DNA of 60,801 nucleotides, counting the filler, from Dugesia japonica (Eukaryota), in NCBI GenBank assembly GCA_001938525.1. It is 6 parts of 6 records of this genome, joined end to end, with 100 filler letters (N's around TTAATTAATTAA, not from the genome) between each part and the next. Parts side by side here need not be neighbours in the genome. Positions count along the whole stretch, not along the records: positions 42,114 to 52,368 come from MQRL01579562.1; 5 more parts are not named here. One strand, 5' to 3'. Positions 41,515-53,151 of the stretch are shown piece by piece (the first letter of the stretch is position 1; the number at the start of each line of letters is the position of its first letter). Position numbers and translations under genes: made by a program. The notes beneath the pieces are model-generated. The model was not told where the DNA came from and did not search any database. It saw nothing but the letters and a program-made list of their open reading frames with translations.

Positions 41515-42295
41515 TGTAGCTATCTTCTTACTTTTATAAAGTCACAGAAGCAAATTACCGTAATTAAACAATTTATAGATTTCTAAATATTTAATAATAC
41601 TTACATTTCATTTTATAACAATAAGTTGGTGATTTGTAAGCAATTAGTTTACAATAACCACAAATTGTCTTATTGGATTTGTTATGTTTACCACCAACTA
41701 TTGAAAGATATTTGAATTTTACTAACTGCTCAGTAGTATTAAGAGTTAATTCTGATGAATCTGGTGTACAATAAATTTGACTTTCATAAGTAAAATAATA
41801 AACGGTGGGATCTTTTGGAAAGATATCTGCATCTGAAAATTCTTTGATNNNNNNNNNNNNNNNNNNNNNNNNNNNNNNNNNNNNNNNNNNNNAAACATTT
41901 ATCGCATAGAATTTCAAATAAATTTCCATTTGCTTTGCATTTGCATCGACATTTATTAGTAATCCATGAAGTATTTACTGGTCGTTTAATAGAATCTTTA
42001 TCAATACAGAAATNNNNNNNNNNNNNNNNNNNNNNNNNNNNNNNNNNNNNNNNNNNNTTAATTAATTAANNNNNNNNNNNNNNNNNNNNNNNNNNNNNNN
42101 NNNNNNNNNNNNNGTAAAATCGTAATAATGGGAATTTGTTATATCCATAATGGATGTTGGTGATTAACAATCAAAAATTTATTAATAGTAACAACGCCAA
42201 ACAAACATATTAGCAATAGTGCAGCTATAATAAGAAGGGGAAAATTAATCCTGCTCAATAATGTGGTAATAATCTATAATAGTNNNNNNNNNNNN

Positions 42296-42790
42296 NCTAC
42301 TAGTAATACAGAAGATAATAACCAAATGATACGAATAATAATCCTAATAGAGATAATAATAAGAATGATAATAGCAGTATTACTAGCGGTAAGAATTATA
42401 ACCATAGTCAGGATATCAATATTAATAAGGATTATAATAATAAATATAACAATGGAAAATTTATTAATAACAGTAATAATAATAATAATAATACTAATGG
42501 TAGTAATAAGTAATAATACTAATGATAGTAATAATAATAATAATGATAATTAGTAATAGCACTCATGATGTTAATAATAATGATAATATTAAAAATGATA
42601 ATAATAATAGTGATAATGATAATAATAGTAATAATAATAATAAGAACAATAATGATAGTTAATGCTAGCAATCATACGATTAATAATAATAATAGTAATA
42701 ATAATGATAATAATAAAACTGTAATAATAACAAGGATGATATTAATGATAAGAATACTGCGACTTATAATGATTATTAATTTGCACTTAT
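42296..42790. repeat. Degenerate AAT-type low-complexity tract
   Basis: Imperfect (AAT)n; its ORFs are poly-Ile/Asn artefacts. Confidence 0.9.
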
Positions 42791-44771
42791 TCAAGTATTT
42801 ATAATTTTAAGTATTAATTTGCACTTATTCAAGTATTTATAATTTTAAGAATATAATATATTAAAATTTAAAATGGTCGTTTAAATATTTAATACAGAAT
42901 CAAAACACATTACAACATAAGAAAATTGTACATACTCTATANNNNNNNNNNNNNNNNNNNNNNNNNNNNNNNNNNNNNNNNNNNNNNNNNNNNNNNNNNN
43001 NNNNNNNNNNNNNNNNNNNNNNNNNNNNNNNNNNNNNNNNNNNNNNNNNNNNNNNNNNNNNNNNNNNNNNNNNNNNNNNNNNNNNNNNNNNNNNNNNNNN
43101 NNNNNNNNNNNNNNNNNNNNNNNNNNNNNNNNNNNNNNNNNNNNNNNNNNNNNNNNNNNNNNNNNNNNNNNNNNNNNNNNNNNNNNNNNNNNNNNNNNNA
43201 ATTTGATCGGTTTCTTTCGGCTGTCACAGTTTTAATTAAATAAATTTGCGATGAACTGGAGATTGTTGAAATTCGCTTTGATAAATTTGCCGACTGATGT
43301 GCTGATGTACTGAGGATTGAATTAAACTGATCTGATTAAGTGAAATATCGAATTTCACTGTTGATATTTGATAAATAATTTTAATGCGTAATAACCGCTT
43401 TCTAGATTTAAGANNNNNNNNNNNNNNNNNNNNNNNNNNNNNNNNNNNNNNNNNNNNNNNNNNNNNNNNNNNNNNNNNNNNNNNNNNNNNNNNNNNNNNN
43501 NNNNNNNNNNNNNNNNNNNNNNNNNNNNNNNNNNNNNNNNNNNNNNNNNNNNNNNNNNNNNNNNNNNNNNNNNNNNNNNNNNNNNNNNNNNNNNNNNNNN
43601 NNNNNNNNNNNNNNNNNNNNNNNNNNNNNNNNNNNNNNNNNNNNNNNNNNNNNNNNNNNNNNNNNNNNNNNNNNNNNNNNNNNNNNNNNNNNNNNNNNNN
43701 NNATTAGTAGGTAATTATTGGCCATTTTCCTTTTAATGTTTTCATTTTATTGGGAAACAATTTAATTATATTTTCTGGTTTATTCGTTTCTTAATGTGTT
43801 TGGTGAAAACTGAAGATAAATTGAGAATAACTTTGGTTGGGTTCTGTCCCAACATAGGTATTAAGTACAATAATTCATACAAAAAAATCAGTAATACACT
43901 AAACAATATGCAAACTTTATTCAAATATATTTAGATTTCATAAGTATACATAAAGTTTTATATACTAAGTTCTTAATTTACATATGGGTTTTGGCAAGTA
44001 ATTAAAATACATACTAATTTTATGAATAATTATGGAAAATACAGTCTAATTTCATTGAGTAATATACATAATTTCTTAATTATATATAGCAATTTCAATA
44101 AACCATATAGATAAATTAATAAGTAAGCAATAATATTATAAAGAAACCACTAAAGTTTTGATACATTAATATCACCTTTATATAAACTTTATAAATTATA
44201 TACGAAGTTTAATAAGTTTAACAAAACATCAATTTTATTTTTTCGAAAATCTTTGAAAGGGTAATTTAATTTTAATAATTGTAATATATCGTATGTTATA
44301 TGAGTCTGTTACACTTATCGTTAAATTTAAAACAACACTTTTCATTTCCAAAATTTATTTCAAACATAAGACCACAAAAAACACAAATTAAAACTTTTTA
44401 TTTAATTCTGATAGAAGTTAGTTAAAAAAATTATTTAATAACCAAAAACAATAAATTTTAGAAAATTATCATTTTTATAGAACTTTTTAATTTTATAATT
44501 TTTCCAAATTATTCAATTAAATCTTCGAGAAATTCATTCAAAAACTTTTAAATTCACATTAAAAATTATATCAAATTATTTTACTTAAAGGTTTATTTGA
44601 AAGTTATTCCAAAAATTATTTATTTAAAATTATTCCAAATTTTAAAATTAACGCTATTTCATCAAAAAAAATGATTTTTATGGAATGAAGTCATTAATTT
44701 AAAATTAATTATTAATACTCCTAATTCTTTTTATATGGTAGATACGTTCCTAAAAAACCGTATAAAAAATA

Positions 44772-45270
44772 CAGGTTACTCACTAAAATTGAGAGTGTCT
44801 CACAACTTTAAAAAATCGTGTAACTTAAAATACTTTACATATTTTTTCAAAGAACCGGGAAAAAATATAATAATGAATATATTATATGTATAAACCTAAT
44901 GATTTTTATAGCGAAATAAAAATAAGTATTACAGTGTAAATTGAGTCCATAAATACAGAAAAAATTTAATAAGAAATAACAAATTATTTTACAGCTATTT
45001 ATTGCTACTTGATAACAAGATTATTACTCATTATTAACTTCCTCTGACTGCATTTTTTTGTTATAAAGTCTGTTATTAGCTTCTGTTATTTTGGTTACTC
45101 AAATTGAATATATAGTTCTTATTATCCAGCTACACAAAACTGAAGATTACGTTGAAATTTTAATGCTCGTTCCGTGTCAGTATCATGAGTAAGAAAATGT
45201 TGTTGTATATTTGCAGCTAATTTTAAGCCTTCGCTACTAGTCTCTGAAATTAAACTTTAACAAAGGAAAA
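44772..45270 (-). mobile_element. pogo/Tigger-like transposase C-terminal relic with one TIR
   Basis: The minus strand reads EGLKLAANIQQHFLTHDTDTERALKFQRNLQFCVAG**ELY...QKLITDFITKK, resembling Tigger C-termini. A TA-CAGGTT terminus sits at 44770-44777. Confidence 0.45.
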
Positions 45271-45849
45271 ATCCCTATATAAATTAATATAATTTTAAAA
45301 AATAATTTAAATAAAAAATTGGCACAAAATTTAAAATGTGAAAAAATTAAATCAAAAATCTAAAATCAAAAAAATTAATTAAAATCCAAAATAATGCATA
45401 ATTAGCACACAAAACATACGAGCAAAAGTTATGTAATCGCACATAAAATTAATGATGAAATTAAATATATTAATATGTTAAATCTTTTCAATAAAAGTAA
45501 TTATCCATTTAAAACTAATTTCTTTTTATTCACTAAAAATTTCTTAATTCACTAATAATTCCTGAGAAAACGAAACATTAGCAAAATTGATAATTCTGAC
45601 AATATCCCTGCTCAATACAAACCGAGAATTCAATCACTTGGCTTAGCACCCTACTGGTTAGTCATATTGAGCCCTGAACTTCAGTGAAAAGAGCCATAAC
45701 GATGCTCAATTCCATATTTAAGCCTAAAACACTATGCCAAATAAACCAAACTCAAGGAAAGCTGATATAATCCTCACTGCAAATAACGGAGACAAGTTCA
45801 CAAATCGTAAGATTTTAAAAACTTTTTTCCAAATTTTAATTGCTTTTCA

Positions 45850-47560
45850 TTTTCTTTTTATATGTCATACTGTCTTTGGAAAAATTTTCTAAATTGTTCG
45901 ATAAGGACCTTCAAATCTGTCTTGGCTTTTATTTAGTATTTCTACCTTGATGAGGACATAATCTCCTACCTCGAATTCTCTATTAGTAGTCACTTTTGAA
46001 ATGTTTTCTTTAGTTATCTCTAAATCCTCTGACTCGTACCACTTTTTTTTGTTAATTTTCGTTTTAAATTCAATCTCAGCCAAGCTCTTTCCAGTCGTCT
46101 TCTATTATGTTGCGTTCATCGTAAATTCTATTTCCCATAAAGTGTTTGCCCAATCCATTGTCTTTCTAACCTGAAGTCTAGCATTAACTTAATCTCAAAT
46201 TGTCCTGAATTGTCTTTACATTTTTCCATTTACATTGTGATGATAGGGACTCGAAAAGCAAAGTTAAATGCCTAGCTTCCATGCAAACGTTCTTATAACT
46301 CTGGTTTCAAATGCTTTTAAACAATTTAGTTTTATCTTTCTCGGACAACCAAATTTGAAAATCTTCTTTTCAAAAATAGCCTTTCGCATTGTTTCTTCGT
46401 CTTGTCAAGGCAGTGCGAACCAAGGCAATAAGAACAAGATATATACTAAACTGGTCTATTATTACAAGAATGTATTTTTTTTGTCCACTTGTTTCCCGCA
46501 TTGATCCACATAGATCTGTGAATATGACTCCAAACAAATTGGTAGCTTCTAATCTCTTTGTCTTCTCTTTAGTTACTGTCATCATTATTTTGACCTTTTT
46601 TTACAAATTTCACGGCTACGAACCATCTCCTGTATTTGATTCTACAAATTCTTCGTAATACGTTTGTTTCTCATATAATTGTACACCTTTTCATGTATTT
46701 CTTCTATTGCTTCGTATATTTTGTCACACAGAATTTTAATTTTCTCGATAAAACTTTTTTCTTCAGAAATGTTTAATTGATACTCTTTATCTGTTTCAAT
46801 TATGTTCAGTACTTTTGTTTTAATCTTGGCATCTTCATGTAACCTTTGACATTGTACACATACCTCGATTCTTGGTCTAGATAACATATTTGCATTATCA
46901 TGTTGAAATCCTTTTCTATATTCCAAAACTATATCTAGACTACTCAGATAATTATTCCATGTCTAGAATTGTGACGTAATTAGGTTCTTCGTCATCATAG
47001 TGAAAGTTAGAGCTTTATTATCTGCTTTAAGAGTAAATCTACTACCGTGTAAGTAATAAATGCATGGAAAAATTATATACAGTCAATGAATCTTTTTTTG
47101 TAATGCAGTATCTCTTTTCATGACGCGTCACTGAGTGTGATTCATTGGCAACAACTTTTTCTCTTCCTTCTTTATCTCTCTTTGACAATAATACTGGCAT
47201 CTGCATCTAATATAAATTCTTTGTATATGTCTGGAAAACACAATATTCGCATAGTAATTAGGGCTTTTTAAAGACCCTCAAAAGTATCATTATTTCCATT
47301 TATTCATTCTAACAGAGACTTTTCCTGATTAATTCTTAAATCAGCCTTCATTATTACCCCAAAAAAACTCTCTTAATTACTTTATAGTGTTGATTTTTAT
47401 TGTTCGTTAATATCAGAATGTCATCAAAAATATACAATGGTTGCATTAACTTTGCCTACTATCATCTCCTGAAATGTTTCCGGTGTCTCTGCAATCCAAA
47501 ATGGCATTAAATTAAAACATTATTATCCGACACTTTTTCGATTTCAATAGTGGATATGAT
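45850..47560 (-). mobile_element. Decayed Gypsy LTR retrotransposon pol (RT-RNase H-integrase)
   Basis: MPF.GL..PETFQ, YLHGSRFTLKADNKAL, EYRKGFQHDNANMLSR, IFTDLCG...KYILVIIDQFS, FSSPYHHNVNG and FEVGDYVL...RFEGPYR appear in Gypsy order. Confidence 0.85.
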
Positions 47561-48988
47561 GAAACCCAATAGAGAAAATTACCGTCCTACGTCAGATAAG
47601 TGATTTTCTTTTTACGCAAAATGTGAAAGTGATGTATGGTATCCTTGGATTAGACATATTTACAAAAAGATATGAAAATGCCATAATACGGTTTGAAAAT
47701 TGGAATGAGGTTTATCATAACAAAATCGTGAGCAAATTAGAAAAATGGATATATACTAGCATAATACCTGATACTGGTCACCAGAAACGTCGTTAGTATA
47801 TAATAGGACTTGTGAAGTAAAGTAGCTACTTGAGACAGCGCGTCAAATTAAACTCCTGTTGAAGTTCCAAGTAGCCAAATTGACTCATTTTCTGATACAG
47901 TACCAGTGGTATGAGAGCCTGCTATAGGGTGAAATATTAAATTATGCAGGTTTTAATACATATCAAGACACTTAAAATTACTAAGACTATACAGACGATC
48001 TTGTAAATGAGTTATGATGATTAAGTATGATGAGAAGTATACAATAGTTCCAAAAAAGGCAAATTCAAAATATTGAACCATTTATGAATATAGAATAACA
48101 ACCATTTTGATCTTGCTTGTTAAAGATTTTCAATAAAATTTTTTTCATCAAATAAATTTAGATATTTACTGATCAATGGTTAAAAAAAACTTTAGATTAA
48201 TGAATATCCTATGTTGACTATCATCATTAGTTGCTCTGTTTGTGTCGTATAGATAAATGTATACTGATTGCACTGTTACTACAATTACTCTGAAAAAAGA
48301 ATAGAAATGTTTATTACTCATAAGTCAGTCAAAGTTACTCGGTAGAGTTACATCTCTACTGACAAATGAATATAAATTTGTGTAACCGACTGATAAAAGT
48401 ACAGGAGTAATGTATCTAAGCCGAAGAAGCGCGACATAAAGTTGGGGAAATTAAACAGGGTCTTTGGTTGACAAAATTTAAGCTACGATGGGAATAAGCA
48501 AGTAAAAAAGGTGCTTCACACACATAAGTCTAGGCGTAAATTTATTTAATATATAGATGCCGTTTTACTGTATTGTAGTGTCTTCAATCTATTTACTCTC
48601 AAATTAGTAATAAGATGAGTGTCAAAAGAAAAGGTTAATGAAAGAAAATTATTCACCTTTAGTAAAAATTGCGGATCATCAGTTTCTGATCGAAGACTAG
48701 GTCTAGGATATTTAATTGAAATTCTTATGACTTTTAGGAGTACCCTAGCGAGTCATTGAGATTTTAAAATAATGCTGCCCATGACACTCTGACAATCTTC
48801 TTCAATATTTTAAGGTTATCAAACGTTGAAAAAAGAAAAAACAATATTCTAAACGTATTTTATTTTAGATAATTAAGATAAGGTGGTCTTGGACACTTTT
48901 GCCCAATTCCTTCATGTTATTTTGCTAACATTTTATCATAACTTTTTCAGATCATAATTTAGTTTAATACGGAATATTAATTAATTAT

Positions 48989-51900
48989 CTACAATCTTTT
49001 TTCATTTAATTTGTCTTTTGACAAATTTTTCTCATGTTTTGAATTATGAAATTTCTTGTAAATAAAACTGATTAGTGATAGTCTAGGTTGTTTACTCACG
49101 GAAGCTTCACAATCCAATGATTCAATTGGACTCATTATTAAATTTCTTTTTTTAGAAAATTGGTGATCAACAGATGCAAAAACATTTGTTCTATTTCTAA
49201 TGATCGGTGTTGGATAGGATTTTCTTGGATTTTTTATATTTTCTGAAAATTTCGTAATTGGTATTGATGGTGTATAATCAGAAAATGTAGGTCCAGTAAA
49301 TGGAATGAACTCATATAAACTTGGCTTTTGGGTATTGTTTTCATTTAATGTTCTATTGTTTGTTAAGGATTTAGAAATTTGATTTGAAGGTGTTTGAACG
49401 TCTTTATCAGAGTTAATATTTTTAAAATAATCAAAATCAGGTGGTGGAGGTAAAATCATCGAGAATTCTGATAATGCATCATCATCGTCGTCATTTGAAT
49501 TTTCTGTTGGACTAGACATTTCATTAGGTGAAAATGAATATTTTATTTCTGGTTTATCATATGCATTTTGAGTTAAGGAGAATAATGACGAACATTGAAA
49601 GGGATTTAAATATGAATTGACTGGGACACTGTTACCCAGGTAGGAAGAAACAGAAGATGAATAAATTTCATTTTTTTGTGGAATTTTGGGAATTTGAAAT
49701 GGATTGTCTTGGGTGTTTGGAGAAAATTTTATGGGTTTACTTTGATCCCAATTACAAGAACGACTCAGTAAATTACTTTTAATAATAGGAACTTTATAAT
49801 CTAATGAATTCTTTCTAATAAATGGTTCGCAATCCATTTTCGACATTAAATCACAAATTTGAATATTCGATTCATTTATCCCAGTCATAGAATCTGCTGA
49901 TGAATTATTAATAGATTGTGATCCTGTTGTTTTTTTCCACCACTTCCGTTTAAATGATTTCCCCATAATTCTGGGAGTATTAGATATATTATTAAGTCTT
50001 AGATTTTCATTATTTTTATTAAAGTTATAAGTTTGATTAAGTTCTTGGATTTTTGCAATTTTTGATGGTGATTCATTTCTAGTTTCAGTAAACATTCTTC
50101 TTGATCTGATCTTATCTACTGGAATAGGAACGTTTTCATTTTTAGTTTTATATCCATATCTTGTACTATTAAATAAATTAATTGCTGGGTCCATAAAATG
50201 CAAATCAACGTGATTAACAGTTGGTGGACCTTCAATCCAACTGGGTTCTTCTATTTCTAATCCAAAATCGATGTCATTAGAATATTTATAAATATTTTGT
50301 CTTTTAGTATTACTATTATTTATTCTTGATCCAAACGCATTATTGCTCACATTATTTTGTTCGCTCAAAACAGAAGCAACTCTATCACTTCTAATAGATG
50401 ATTCACCAAGATTATTTTTTGATATTGATGAAATATCCGGATTTCTTCCATTCATTTCATTTGATAAACTTTTTTTACTTATAATTCTTCCATCTAATTG
50501 ATTCAAAGCATTTATTGAAGGTTTTGATGTAGTTCTTATATCGACAGAAGAAGTTTTTGATTTAATATTAGTCGATCCTTTATGGGGTATTTTAGAATCA
50601 ATATTCGATTCTCCAATTGTGGTTTTATTTTTTATATTTATAGATTCTTGAGTTCCTGTTTTATCACCGTCATCAGAATCTTTAGCAATTTCTTCATAAT
50701 CTTTCTCAAGTGTCATAATATCATCTCTTGCTTCTAAAAACTCCCCTTCTTCCAAGCCTTCACCAACAAACCAATGAACAAATGCCCGTTTATTAAAAAT
50801 TAAATCGAATTTACTTCTGTCTCTCTTCCAAGCTTCACATATACCAACATTACCCGATACCATACAAAGACAATTAGTTGGAGTAGCTAAGGGCAAATTA
50901 GGTACACCTACTGGAGGGATTGTATTCAAGCCTAATTTAAAACCAGTCGGACACCAATCAACAAATGATATTCTGCGATCACATTTTACTTTTGAAACTG
51001 CATCGTAAACAGCTTTTGGGCTAATATATCCCCGATATAACAAGCAACAAGATGTATATTTATTATTTTCAAATCCACAATCAAGAAAATGTGAATCACT
51101 CTGAAAAACGAATCTAGTTAATTCTGCAACGTCAACTTTTTCATGTTTAATTTGACTCTGACTTACAATTGGAGCATAGCTAAGTACAGGGAAATGAATT
51201 CTCGGATATGGTACTAAATTCGTCAAGAGTTCATCCACATCAATATGGTGTGTACCTTCGTAACGATAGCGATGAGAAAGAAAAACACAGGTTACCATCT
51301 GACTAATCAACCGGTTCATTAAAATATAAGTAGGTTTATCACATTTCAAATTACTCAATGCTTTTCTATATAGAGATTCATTGTCAAATAAAATACCGCA
51401 ATCAATCAGTTCAATGGCACTATGTGTATGAAGAAGAGAATTATATGGATCGACTGTACTTTGTGACATAGTTGACGATGGAAAAATTCCAACAGAAACC
51501 CGAAATTTTTTCCCATATTCTTCAGATAATTTTATCAACAAAAGACTTGTTAGTCCTGATCCGCTTCCACCAGCATAGGAATGCATTATTTGAAAAGCAG
51601 AAACACTTTCACAATTATTTACAACTTTACGAACGGAATCCATCAAAACTTCTAATTTGTCTTTACCAACTGTATAATATCCTCTTGCATAATTGTTAGC
51701 AGCATCTTCAGTACCGCTAATCAAACTGGAGGGACTGAATAAACTTCTATAAACACCACTCCGAATTTCATCTATATAAATTACAGTTGAATTATATTTT
51801 GAATAATTTTTAACAAAACTAACCAACAACTGTGGGTTCTAAATCAACCATAACAGTTCTAGGAATATATTGGTCATTTGATTCACAAAATAATGTCTCT

Positions 51901-52046
51901 ATTCGATCATTCAAATCACTTTCTTTATTTTGAATTAATTTCCCTTCTGCACTAACTCCATGTTCAATACAATAAAGTTCCCACATTGCACTTCCCATTT
52001 GAACACCAGCTTGTCCGATGTGTAGTGTAACAATTTCCTTAGGCAT
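48989..52046 (-). CDS. Divergent alpha-tubulin with ~557-aa C-terminal extension (1001 aa; exon 1 52046-51824, intron 51823-51772, exon 2 51771-48989)
   Basis: Exon 1 reads MPKEIVTLHIGQAGVQMGSAMWELYCIEHG...PRTVMVDLEPTVV. A 52-nt GTTAGT..TATAG phase-1 intron rebuilds the G|AT Asp of DEIR. Exon 2 has EDAANNYARG, HSYAGGSGSG, TNLVPYPRIHFP, FVDWCPTGFK, KRAFVHWFVGEGLEEGEF and LEKDYEE, all alpha-tubulin hallmarks. The frame stays open from about 50662 to the stop at 48989. Confidence 0.93.
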
Positions 52047-52266
52047 TTGACAATGAATAAAATAAAGATAGATGGCAATCAATTTCGTAAATCGATGTCA
52101 AATTATTAAAATTTACTATTTAACCTGTCTAATTTAAATTTCAATTTCACAACGAAATTTAGTATATTTCAATGAGGTTTTAAGAGTTTGAAAATTTAAA
52201 AAAATTTATTTAAATTGCAAAAAAATTAATATTTCATCATCCAACAAAATTATATCATAAAAAACG

Positions 52267-52270
<4 letters not shown>

Positions 52271-52300
<30 letters not shown>
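52271..52300. repeat. (AT)n microsatellite upstream of the tubulin gene
   Basis: Pure AT run. Confidence 0.95.
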
Positions 52301-52303
<3 letters not shown>

Positions 52304-53151
52304 GAAATAATTATTAATTAATAATTTCAGCCAATAAAAATTGAGATAACTAAATATTATTATTTAGTNNNNNNNNNNNNNNNNNNNNNNNNNNNNNNNN
52401 NNNNNNNNNNNNTTAATTAATTAANNNNNNNNNNNNNNNNNNNNNNNNNNNNNNNNNNNNNNNNNNNNTAAATTATAATTTCATAGTTAATAAAGAATAT
52501 GAAAGAAAAGAATAAGAAAAAATATACGTCGAATCATTACAAGGGATGACTATTGGACCTGATAATTATGGGACAATTAAAGATAAACAGACAAAATATT
52601 TGATAGAAAACAAATTTAACAGAAATATGGAGAGAATTTTCAACCTCTACTAATTAATAATAAAAGATTGTTATATTATTTAACGATTGCACATATGTTG
52701 CATTTAATGTAAATTTCTTTTTTGCATATAATATCTTGCATAAAAAAATAAATACTGCCCAATCTCTGGCACAAAACATAATTATTGTCTAATCTCCTAT
52801 ATAAATATCAAGACTGCCCCATCTAATACATAAATATCAATGCTGCTCAAATATACATATATTTTCTATAACATCATTTTTAAAAAAAATCATTATTTTT
52901 TATTAAAAAAACACCATTTTTCAAAAAATCATTACTCTACCCCCACCTTACAGGAAAAATTCATTTAATACTTTTAATGTCTATTAATTAATTTCCTTTT
53001 CAATCATATACTTTTCCTTTGAAAGAAAAATTTTTTAAACCCCATTATATTACTTACAAAAATTAACCAATCAAACTATCGATTAAAAAATCTTTAGTTA
53101 CCCTCTACCTCACAAATATCTTATTCCCCATCACATTACTTCTTCAACAAG

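Follow-up and report, generated by a model that had tools for sequence, protein, structure and literature searches.

A transcribed alpha-family tubulin gene of Dugesia japonica with a 557-residue C-terminal tail

The C-terminal tails of tubulins normally comprise 10–20 acidic residues, on which the "tubulin code" is chiefly written and by which motors and microtubule-associated proteins (MAPs) chiefly take hold. Among the latter tau, MAP2 and MAP4 are separate proteins, in which basic disordered projection domains are combined with tubulin-binding repeats that Pfam recognises. In the bacterial protein FtsZ a fast-evolving, probably disordered linker of tens to about 300 residues leads to one conserved C-terminal docking peptide. 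Here we describe a gene for a giant alpha-family tubulin in a window of 60,801 nucleotides (nt) of joined Dugesia japonica sequence (GCA_001938525.1), where it lies on the piece from MQRL01579562.1 (positions 42114–52368). Among characterised tubulins the alpha3-tubulin of Toxoplasma gondii, which starts with MPREI, has a 48-residue tail that a 2023 survey termed extraordinarily long and unseen elsewhere (PMC10056924). Caenorhabditis elegans TBA-6 has an alpha tail without polyglutamylation sites and specialises ciliary microtubules (PMC8987236). Our literature searches returned no description of a tubulin whose tail runs to hundreds of residues; the 557-residue tail reported here is about ten times the longest that we found described for a characterised tubulin.

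The gene was delineated from a listing of open reading frames (ORFs) and a reconstruction of the splice, and occupies the minus strand as two exons (Table 1). Two minus-strand ORFs contribute to it, one of 946 codons (48989..51829) and one of 87 codons (51819..52082), the latter opening the tubulin sequence. The joined coding sequence (CDS) of 3006 nt specifies 1001 amino acids and a stop, with a core of 444 and a tail of 557 residues in a single frame. The splice joint reads ...EPTVV/D/EIRSG, matching canonical alpha-tubulin, and the core ends in ...LEKDYEEIAKDSDDGD at residue 444, the tail beginning at 50662. A preliminary account made from the DNA alone (the sequence-only reading) had given a protein of 1001 residues with a tail of about 557 from about position 50662, and the reconstruction returned identical figures. 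No stop interrupts the tail frame, against 22–87 in the remaining five. With a stop frequency of about 0.087 per codon, the probability of such openness by chance is of the order of 1e-22. When the tail DNA was shuffled 2000 times, the longest open run came to 50 codons on average and to 146 at most. The open frame is therefore not due to chance; the earlier rough estimate of 1e-20 had led to the same view.

Transcription was investigated by aligning three sets of RNA data (X1, X4 and X22) to positions 47500–52368; in all, 20 runs from 8 studies carry matching sequence. Among the RNA-type contigs of X1, one of 2185 nt (depth about 91) spans 52087–51826, omits the intron and then extends without a break from 51772 to 49847, reaching 815 nt beyond the core-tail junction at 50662. 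A second, of 954 nt (depth 97), runs from 49873 to 48923 and overlaps the first, the pair covering the entire CDS. An apparent 53-nt skip with an inserted G in X1 represents the intron splice together with a synonymous substitution (GTT>GTC). X4, from a separate study, supplied one contig spliced precisely at 51771/51824 and a further 380-nt contig within the tail, without mismatches. Contigs of two studies thus remove exactly the 52-nt intron, which argues against genomic contamination as their source. In X22, which consists of stranded oligo-dT raw reads, a sparse and even scatter covers core and tail, and the reads outside a cross-mapping bin (50923–51085) are all oriented as minus-strand RNA, in core and tail bins alike. 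Core and tail are carried by a single minus-strand mRNA. Of the checks proposed with the sequence-only reading, RNA across 51823–51772 proved to be spliced there, and RNA across the core-tail junction to be continuous.

Within the cross-mapping bin a depth spike at 50936–50966 was rejected as the gene's own expression. These 31 nt, which encode FVDWCPTGFK, draw about 300 soft-clipped X22 reads of canonical alpha-tubulin, the flanks of which encode ATIKTKRTIQ and another 10-residue canonical stretch. The same reads reveal that a canonical alpha-tubulin is present in this organism and is expressed far more highly. For short-read quantification of the giant tubulin gene 50936–50966 must be masked.

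A word-indexed search with the tail in full-length context gave a sole homologue, P0001 (E 3.8e-124; 48% of residues identical along 91% of the tail), and an exhaustive phmmer search with the tail against 1.84 billion representatives revealed nothing besides it. P0001, of 991 amino acids, is encoded on L001, a 3.4-kb genomic Logan contig from another species. L001 possesses a matching exon 1 (MPKEIVTLHIGQAGVQMG...), a 54-nt intron at the identical codon and no stop at the junction, and its tail frame has no in-frame stops versus 16–60 in the other frames. The alignment of the two loci thus shows the architecture of core, tail and intron site to be conserved in a second species. The giant tubulin protein itself was not found in the protein collections searched.

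Between the window and L001 the cores share 92% amino acid identity, with proportions of synonymous and non-synonymous differences (pS and pN) of 0.76, which is saturated, and 0.047; the tails share 46% identity, with a pS of 0.77, likewise saturated, and a pN of 0.34. Identity at codon positions 1, 2 and 3 amounts to 92, 97 and 53% in the core and to 63, 66 and 42% in the tail. A comparison with the X1 contigs sidesteps the saturation that affects these values of pS. They diverge by about 2.4% from the window, with all 40 listed differences in the tail. Of these 22 are synonymous and 18 non-synonymous, and the CDS contains neither a stop nor an indel (pN/pS about 0.21; binomial P 1.8e-6 against neutrality). 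As judged from these substitutions, both core and tail are shown to be under purifying selection. A stop near residue 445 in an orthologue and a tail free of such selection had been named beforehand as counter-evidence; L001 has no stop there, and the tail shows the pN/pS just given together with a pN below pS against L001. Transcripts, orthologue and purifying selection show that this is a genuine giant alpha-family tubulin and neither a chance ORF nor a pseudogene.

The extreme C-terminus (48992–49045, compared with L001 3262–3313) shows no conservation at the coding level. In L001 the stop follows directly on KKFHHQPKP, while the window continues for 18 codons more (...NSKHEKNLSKDKLNEKRL); the DNA past the L001 stop still resembles these last codons, save for a 1-nt indel.

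Exon 2 contains the Pfam domains Tubulin (PF00091; E 6.9e-32) and Tubulin_C (PF03953; E 1.2e-31), and the PF00091 matches of both exons as well as that to PF03953 all lie above the gathering scores, placing the protein in the tubulin superfamily. The 60 best sequences from the PDB are all alpha-tubulins (E 1.8e-127 to 2e-119; query 1–369 aligned to chain 77–443), and every named database match is alpha; the assignment to this family is by best and end-to-end match rather than by a rooted tree comparing beta, gamma and other classes. The likeness to canonical alpha-tubulin (TUBA1A/1B/1C; PDB 3j8x, 1jff) covers both domains from end to end and includes the alpha-type H1-S2 loop, a full-length alpha-specific S9-S10 loop (GFKLGLNTIPPVGVPNLPLATPTNCLCMVS, aligning ungapped to a 30-residue PDB segment) and a helix H12 ending in EKDYEE. 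In the PDB alignment the N-site guanosine triphosphate (GTP) contacts GQAG, D69/E71, N101, S140, N206, Y224 and N228 are retained. So are D251 and E254 (GTHHIDVDELLTNLVPYP aligned to GALNVDLTEFQTNLVPYP), which are also kept in L001 and in two further proteins, P0095 and P0148. D251 and E254 are the residues with which alpha-tubulin triggers GTP hydrolysis on the next beta-tubulin, beta carrying lysine, and E254 serves a purpose only where the subunit stacks on beta-tubulin in the polymer.

The core also departs from the canonical pattern. It is 49–51% identical to canonical alphas; where 16 of these agree throughout, at 190 columns, the protein matches 127 and differs at 63, and there is an insertion of two amino acids (FLSHRYRY). 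The glycine-rich nucleotide-binding loop (GGGTGSG) is present as AGGSGSG, with a conservative change of T to S that does not fit the strict pattern [SAG]GGTG[SA]G. Both the window protein and that of L001 start with MPKEIV in place of the MREC/MREI autoregulation motif, and L001 does not share the lysine found at position K40. Instead of a short acidic tail ending in EEY/EEF, on which the tyrosination cycle and polyglutamylation act, DSDDGD is followed by the 557 non-acidic residues. The C-termini are ...NEKRL in the window and ...HQPKP in L001, and the normal tyrosination cycle is therefore excluded by sequence in both orthologues, as had been claimed from the window protein.

The tail has a predicted mass of 63 kDa, an isoelectric point (pI) of 9.4 (9.1 in L001) and a grand average of hydropathy of -0.87. 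It was described beforehand as rich in S, N, K and P, which the counts bear out (S 80, N 68, K 51, P 38), with I at 50. It is not of low complexity (20-residue entropy 3.26 versus 3.42 in the core), and no internal repeats were found in it. A fast-evolving, very basic linker of about 125 residues is open in both the window and L001, with small, in-frame length differences, and is followed by 12 conserved blocks of 8–46 residues that are 75–95% identical between the two. These include DFGLEIEEPSWIEG, TRYGYK, SSSVSS.LGNS and FIPFTGP; the 46-residue block can also be given as KRKWW...QICDL..KMDCEP. The purifying selection and the 12 blocks suggest that the tail is translated and used.

With E allowed up to 1, searches for known domains in the tail gave noise only and no family in Pfam, and no match to the tail profile in the PDB; an ESM Atlas feature search gave scores of at most 0.78, none reaching 0.8 and thus at an uninformative level. 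Neither tubulin-binding repeats nor any other known microtubule-binding domain was found in the tail by these Pfam, PDB and atlas searches. SxIP-type motifs were considered and dropped, their positions not being conserved between the orthologues. AlphaFold2 gave a mean predicted local distance difference test (pLDDT) score of 36 for exon 2 with a 20-sequence alignment, the core itself being poorly modelled, and of 33 for the tail with two sequences. In these poor models the tail lacks secondary structure except for one low-confidence helix within residues 948–983; disorder of the tail fits its composition.

Toxoplasma alpha3-tubulin and its coccidian homologues resemble the present protein in being divergent alphas with an altered N-terminal motif (MPREI, here MPKEI) and an over-long, poorly conserved tail. 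They differ in tail length (48 against 557 residues) and in the loss by alpha3 of D251/E254, which are kept here, and no sequence relationship was found between the alpha3 tail and the 557-residue one. The signature AGGSGSG also occurs in accepted Plasmodium tubulins, where it is termed a "degenerate signature" (PMC10056924). With TBA-6 the protein shares an atypical, non-glutamylatable alpha tail, but TBA-6 is of normal size, its atypical tail is short and it is otherwise near the canonical alphas. The structural MAPs offer a comparable basic, hydrophilic and domain-poor polypeptide expected at the microtubule surface, from which the tail differs in having neither their repeats nor a Pfam family. 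FtsZ, with its linker and C-terminal peptide, may be likened to it in the way it works, as a tubulin-superfamily subunit with a linker and docking peptides; the analogy implies no homology with the tail.

Searches with the core also revealed P0095 (613 amino acids, 59% identical) and P0148 (573 amino acids, 57% identical). The latter is encoded at 267–1988 of contig L002, from the same sample as L001 and with the same intron position. With 89% identity in the core and 55% in the tail, P0095 and P0148 are, on this comparison, orthologues of each other. Their tails of about 220 residues (type 2) show no similarity by BLASTP to the 557-residue type 1 (E above 2), and both keep the signature SGGTGSG. 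All four tailed proteins share derived characters, among them the two-residue insertion (FLSHRY..) and SNTTA>SGNVG, and, in an unrooted tree in which long branches meet, the window protein, P0001, P0095 and P0148 form a clade with 100/100 support. Some 1.8 changes per site separate this clade from the canonical alphas, whereas animal and fungal canonical alphas differ by at most 0.3. The tree and shared characters thus show the four tailed alpha-like tubulins to be a small clade of two paralogue types with unrelated tails. The type-2 tail has conserved blocks of its own, among them PYSKLLYEDIVE.IDTKLYSSN.KMLKKLNKLQ.RLNQMN and KNLDFSSREQIVCSP. P0095 is AT-rich-coded and possibly derives from the window's organism. 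Database "tubulins" of 800–1500 amino acids were rejected as tailed tubulins: they score about double and contain repeated tubulin or unrelated domains and, not inspected singly, look like tandem-gene or fusion gene models.

Table 1. Coordinates in the window of the parts of the giant tubulin gene and of neighbouring features
Feature	Residues	Position	Strand	Remarks
Exon 1		51824..52046	-	ATG 52046–52044; 74 codons plus 1 base; N-terminus MPKEIVTLHIGQAGVQMG...; Pfam Tubulin E 1.5e-14; spanned by two spliced RNA-type contigs (X1 record 2, X4 record 9)
Intron		51772..51823	-	52 nt; GT..AG; phase 1; position common to L001 and L002
Exon 2, whole		51771..48989	-	Includes stop
Exon 2, core part	75–444	50663..51771	-	GTPase domain, Tubulin_C, helix H12; end ...EKDYEEIAKDSDDGD
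Tail coding	445–1001	48992..50662	-	557 codons, contiguous and in frame with core
Basic linker	445–570	50285..50662	-	pI 10.2; pN 0.51 versus pS 0.61 between orthologues
Block DFGLEIEEPSWIEGPPT	576–592	50219..50269	-	15/17 identical to L001
Largest block, KRKWWKKTTGSQSINNSSADS.TGI.E.N.QICDL.SKMDCEP	682–727	49814..49951	-	46 amino acids; 38/46 identical to L001
Block T.DNPFQIP	761–769	49688..49714	-	8/9 identical; NPF in both orthologues
Block SEFSM.LPPPPDFDYFK	842–858	49421..49471	-	16/17 identical; fit to [FYWL]P.PP in both orthologues
Blocks KKR.LIMSPIESLDCEAS.SK and LSL.SFIYKKFH	948–983	49046..49153	-	19/21 and 11/12 identical
Stop codon TAG		48989..48991	-	DNA reading
Conserved 3' flank/untranslated region element		48865..48991	-	About 127 nt; about 85% identical to L001 3314–3429
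Broken long terminal repeat (LTR) retroelement pol ORFs		45889–47206	-	Order RNase H then integrase; ...NANMLSRP motif

At the 3' end of the gene the identity of the flanking element (Table 1) is about 85% although synonymous sites are saturated between the window and L001. A perfect 10-bp inverted repeat (TAGATAATTA...TAATTATCTA) closes the element, inside which lies a conserved hairpin, TTGGGCA-AAAG-TGTCCAA; at one position of its stem the two species differ, one having G-U and the other A-U. The element starts about 50 nt past the earlier stop codon of L001, and the L001 contig ends exactly at the far repeat; the X1 contig ends inside the element at 48923. It may be a structured element of the 3' untranslated region. 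Rfam returned no family at threshold for the element, and a sub-threshold match to mir-268, on the opposite strand, was taken as chance.

Just downstream of the tubulin gene, on the same strand, is a decayed retrotransposon, the pol fragments of which have sub-threshold matches (RT_RNaseH, E 5.9e-05; rve, E 0.009). These fragments accord with the earlier statement that the gene stays intact among stop-filled transposons. The surrounding non-coding DNA is extremely AT-rich (11–19% GC), and an (AT)n microsatellite occurs upstream of the gene at about 52270–52300. Runs of N inside the piece lie at 42284–42296 (13 nt), 42942–43199 (258 nt) and 43414–43702 (289 nt).

The gene is real and unusual; its function we infer. 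To the reading that it specifies a functional, lineage-restricted alpha-tubulin paralogue of 1001 amino acids and a predicted 113 kDa or so, most likely a beta-tubulin-paired lattice subunit with an adaptor tail, we assign a probability of roughly 0.7. The core would most likely pair with beta-tubulin and enter the microtubule lattice, a step made probable by the retention of D251 and E254, the GTP contacts and alpha-type loops kept and the tight constraint on the core. Since helix H12 ends on the outer surface in solved alpha-tubulin structures, the 557-residue tail would project outward. One option is that the basic tail binds back to the lattice beside the acidic tails of neighbouring tubulins; alternatively, the conserved blocks that follow the linker could be presented to partners as tethered docking or lattice-binding sites. 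In either case the tail would act like a built-in MAP or adaptor replacing the normally modified acidic tail and, by analogy, like the linker and docking peptide of FtsZ. The sequence-only reading had likewise proposed a built-in MAP or adaptor domain, perhaps for a specialised array such as that of sperm or cilia. From the MPKE start and the missing EEY end, escape from TTC5-type autoregulation, from the tyrosination cycle and from canonical tail polyglutamylation is predicted.

Several points weigh against this. The tubulin signature is degenerate, and with no more than about 50% core identity to canonical alphas and 63 of the 190 invariant positions changed, lattice competence is uncertain; polymerisation and partner binding are predicted from sequence. 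The 113-kDa product is predicted from gene and transcripts, and expression is low, at about 13 genuine reads in X22, the one raw-read run usable. The LPPPP (EVH1-ligand) and NPF (EH-ligand) motifs are pattern matches only, and disorder is not established, as both AlphaFold models are too poor to count. Some of these features would suit a protein that keeps the fold and does not polymerise, in which the core is a head binding beta-tubulin, a microtubule end or a chaperone and the tail does the work as scaffold or regulator. The long branch of the clade (1.8 changes per site versus at most 0.3 among canonical alphas), the replacement of a third of the canonically invariant positions, AGGSGSG, the unconserved K40, the MPKE start and the low expression all favour such a protein, but we think it unlikely: the GTP contacts and D251 are retained together with E254, which matters only when stacked on beta-tubulin, and the core has a pN of 0.047 at saturated pS, H11-H12 included.

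The remaining explanations concern the product rather than its role. That the ORF is real while the main product is a tubulin of normal length, through alternative polyadenylation, splicing or proteolysis after the core, seems improbable, since around 50662 the aligned runs have neither a joint nor a loose end and molecule ends do not pile up, the X1 depth is level over core and tail (about 90–97 throughout), and purifying selection and 12 conserved blocks mark the tail. It draws on the many cryptic poly(A) signals that an AT-rich coding sequence supplies, on the blindness of contigs to rare or alternative isoforms and on a raw-read depth too low to exclude them. Decayed retroelements adjoin the gene, and the absence of the protein from the collections searched might likewise point to an artefact of misassembly or to a dying gene, a functionless recent read-through or fusion. 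This is effectively refuted: independent assemblies of two species and transcript contigs of two studies have the same architecture, the frame is open across saturated divergence, and pN/pS lies well below 1.

If, as in the reading preferred here, the giant alpha-tubulin does become part of the lattice, nature would have made the experiment of fusing an adaptor to the polymer subunit itself. The protein would then allow direct tests of the bulk and charge that a microtubule surface can bear and of how a specialised array is built without post-translational modifications. The tail, with no homologue beyond one related species, is also a case of a long coding extension that arose rapidly, in a genome very rich in AT. 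More tentatively, the tailed proteins, of at least two paralogue types, may together represent a lineage-specific family of "self-decorating" alpha-tubulins, lattice subunits with adaptor or MAP-like tails of their own, in which the appendage, rather than post-translational modifications or separate MAPs, would specify particular microtubule arrays.

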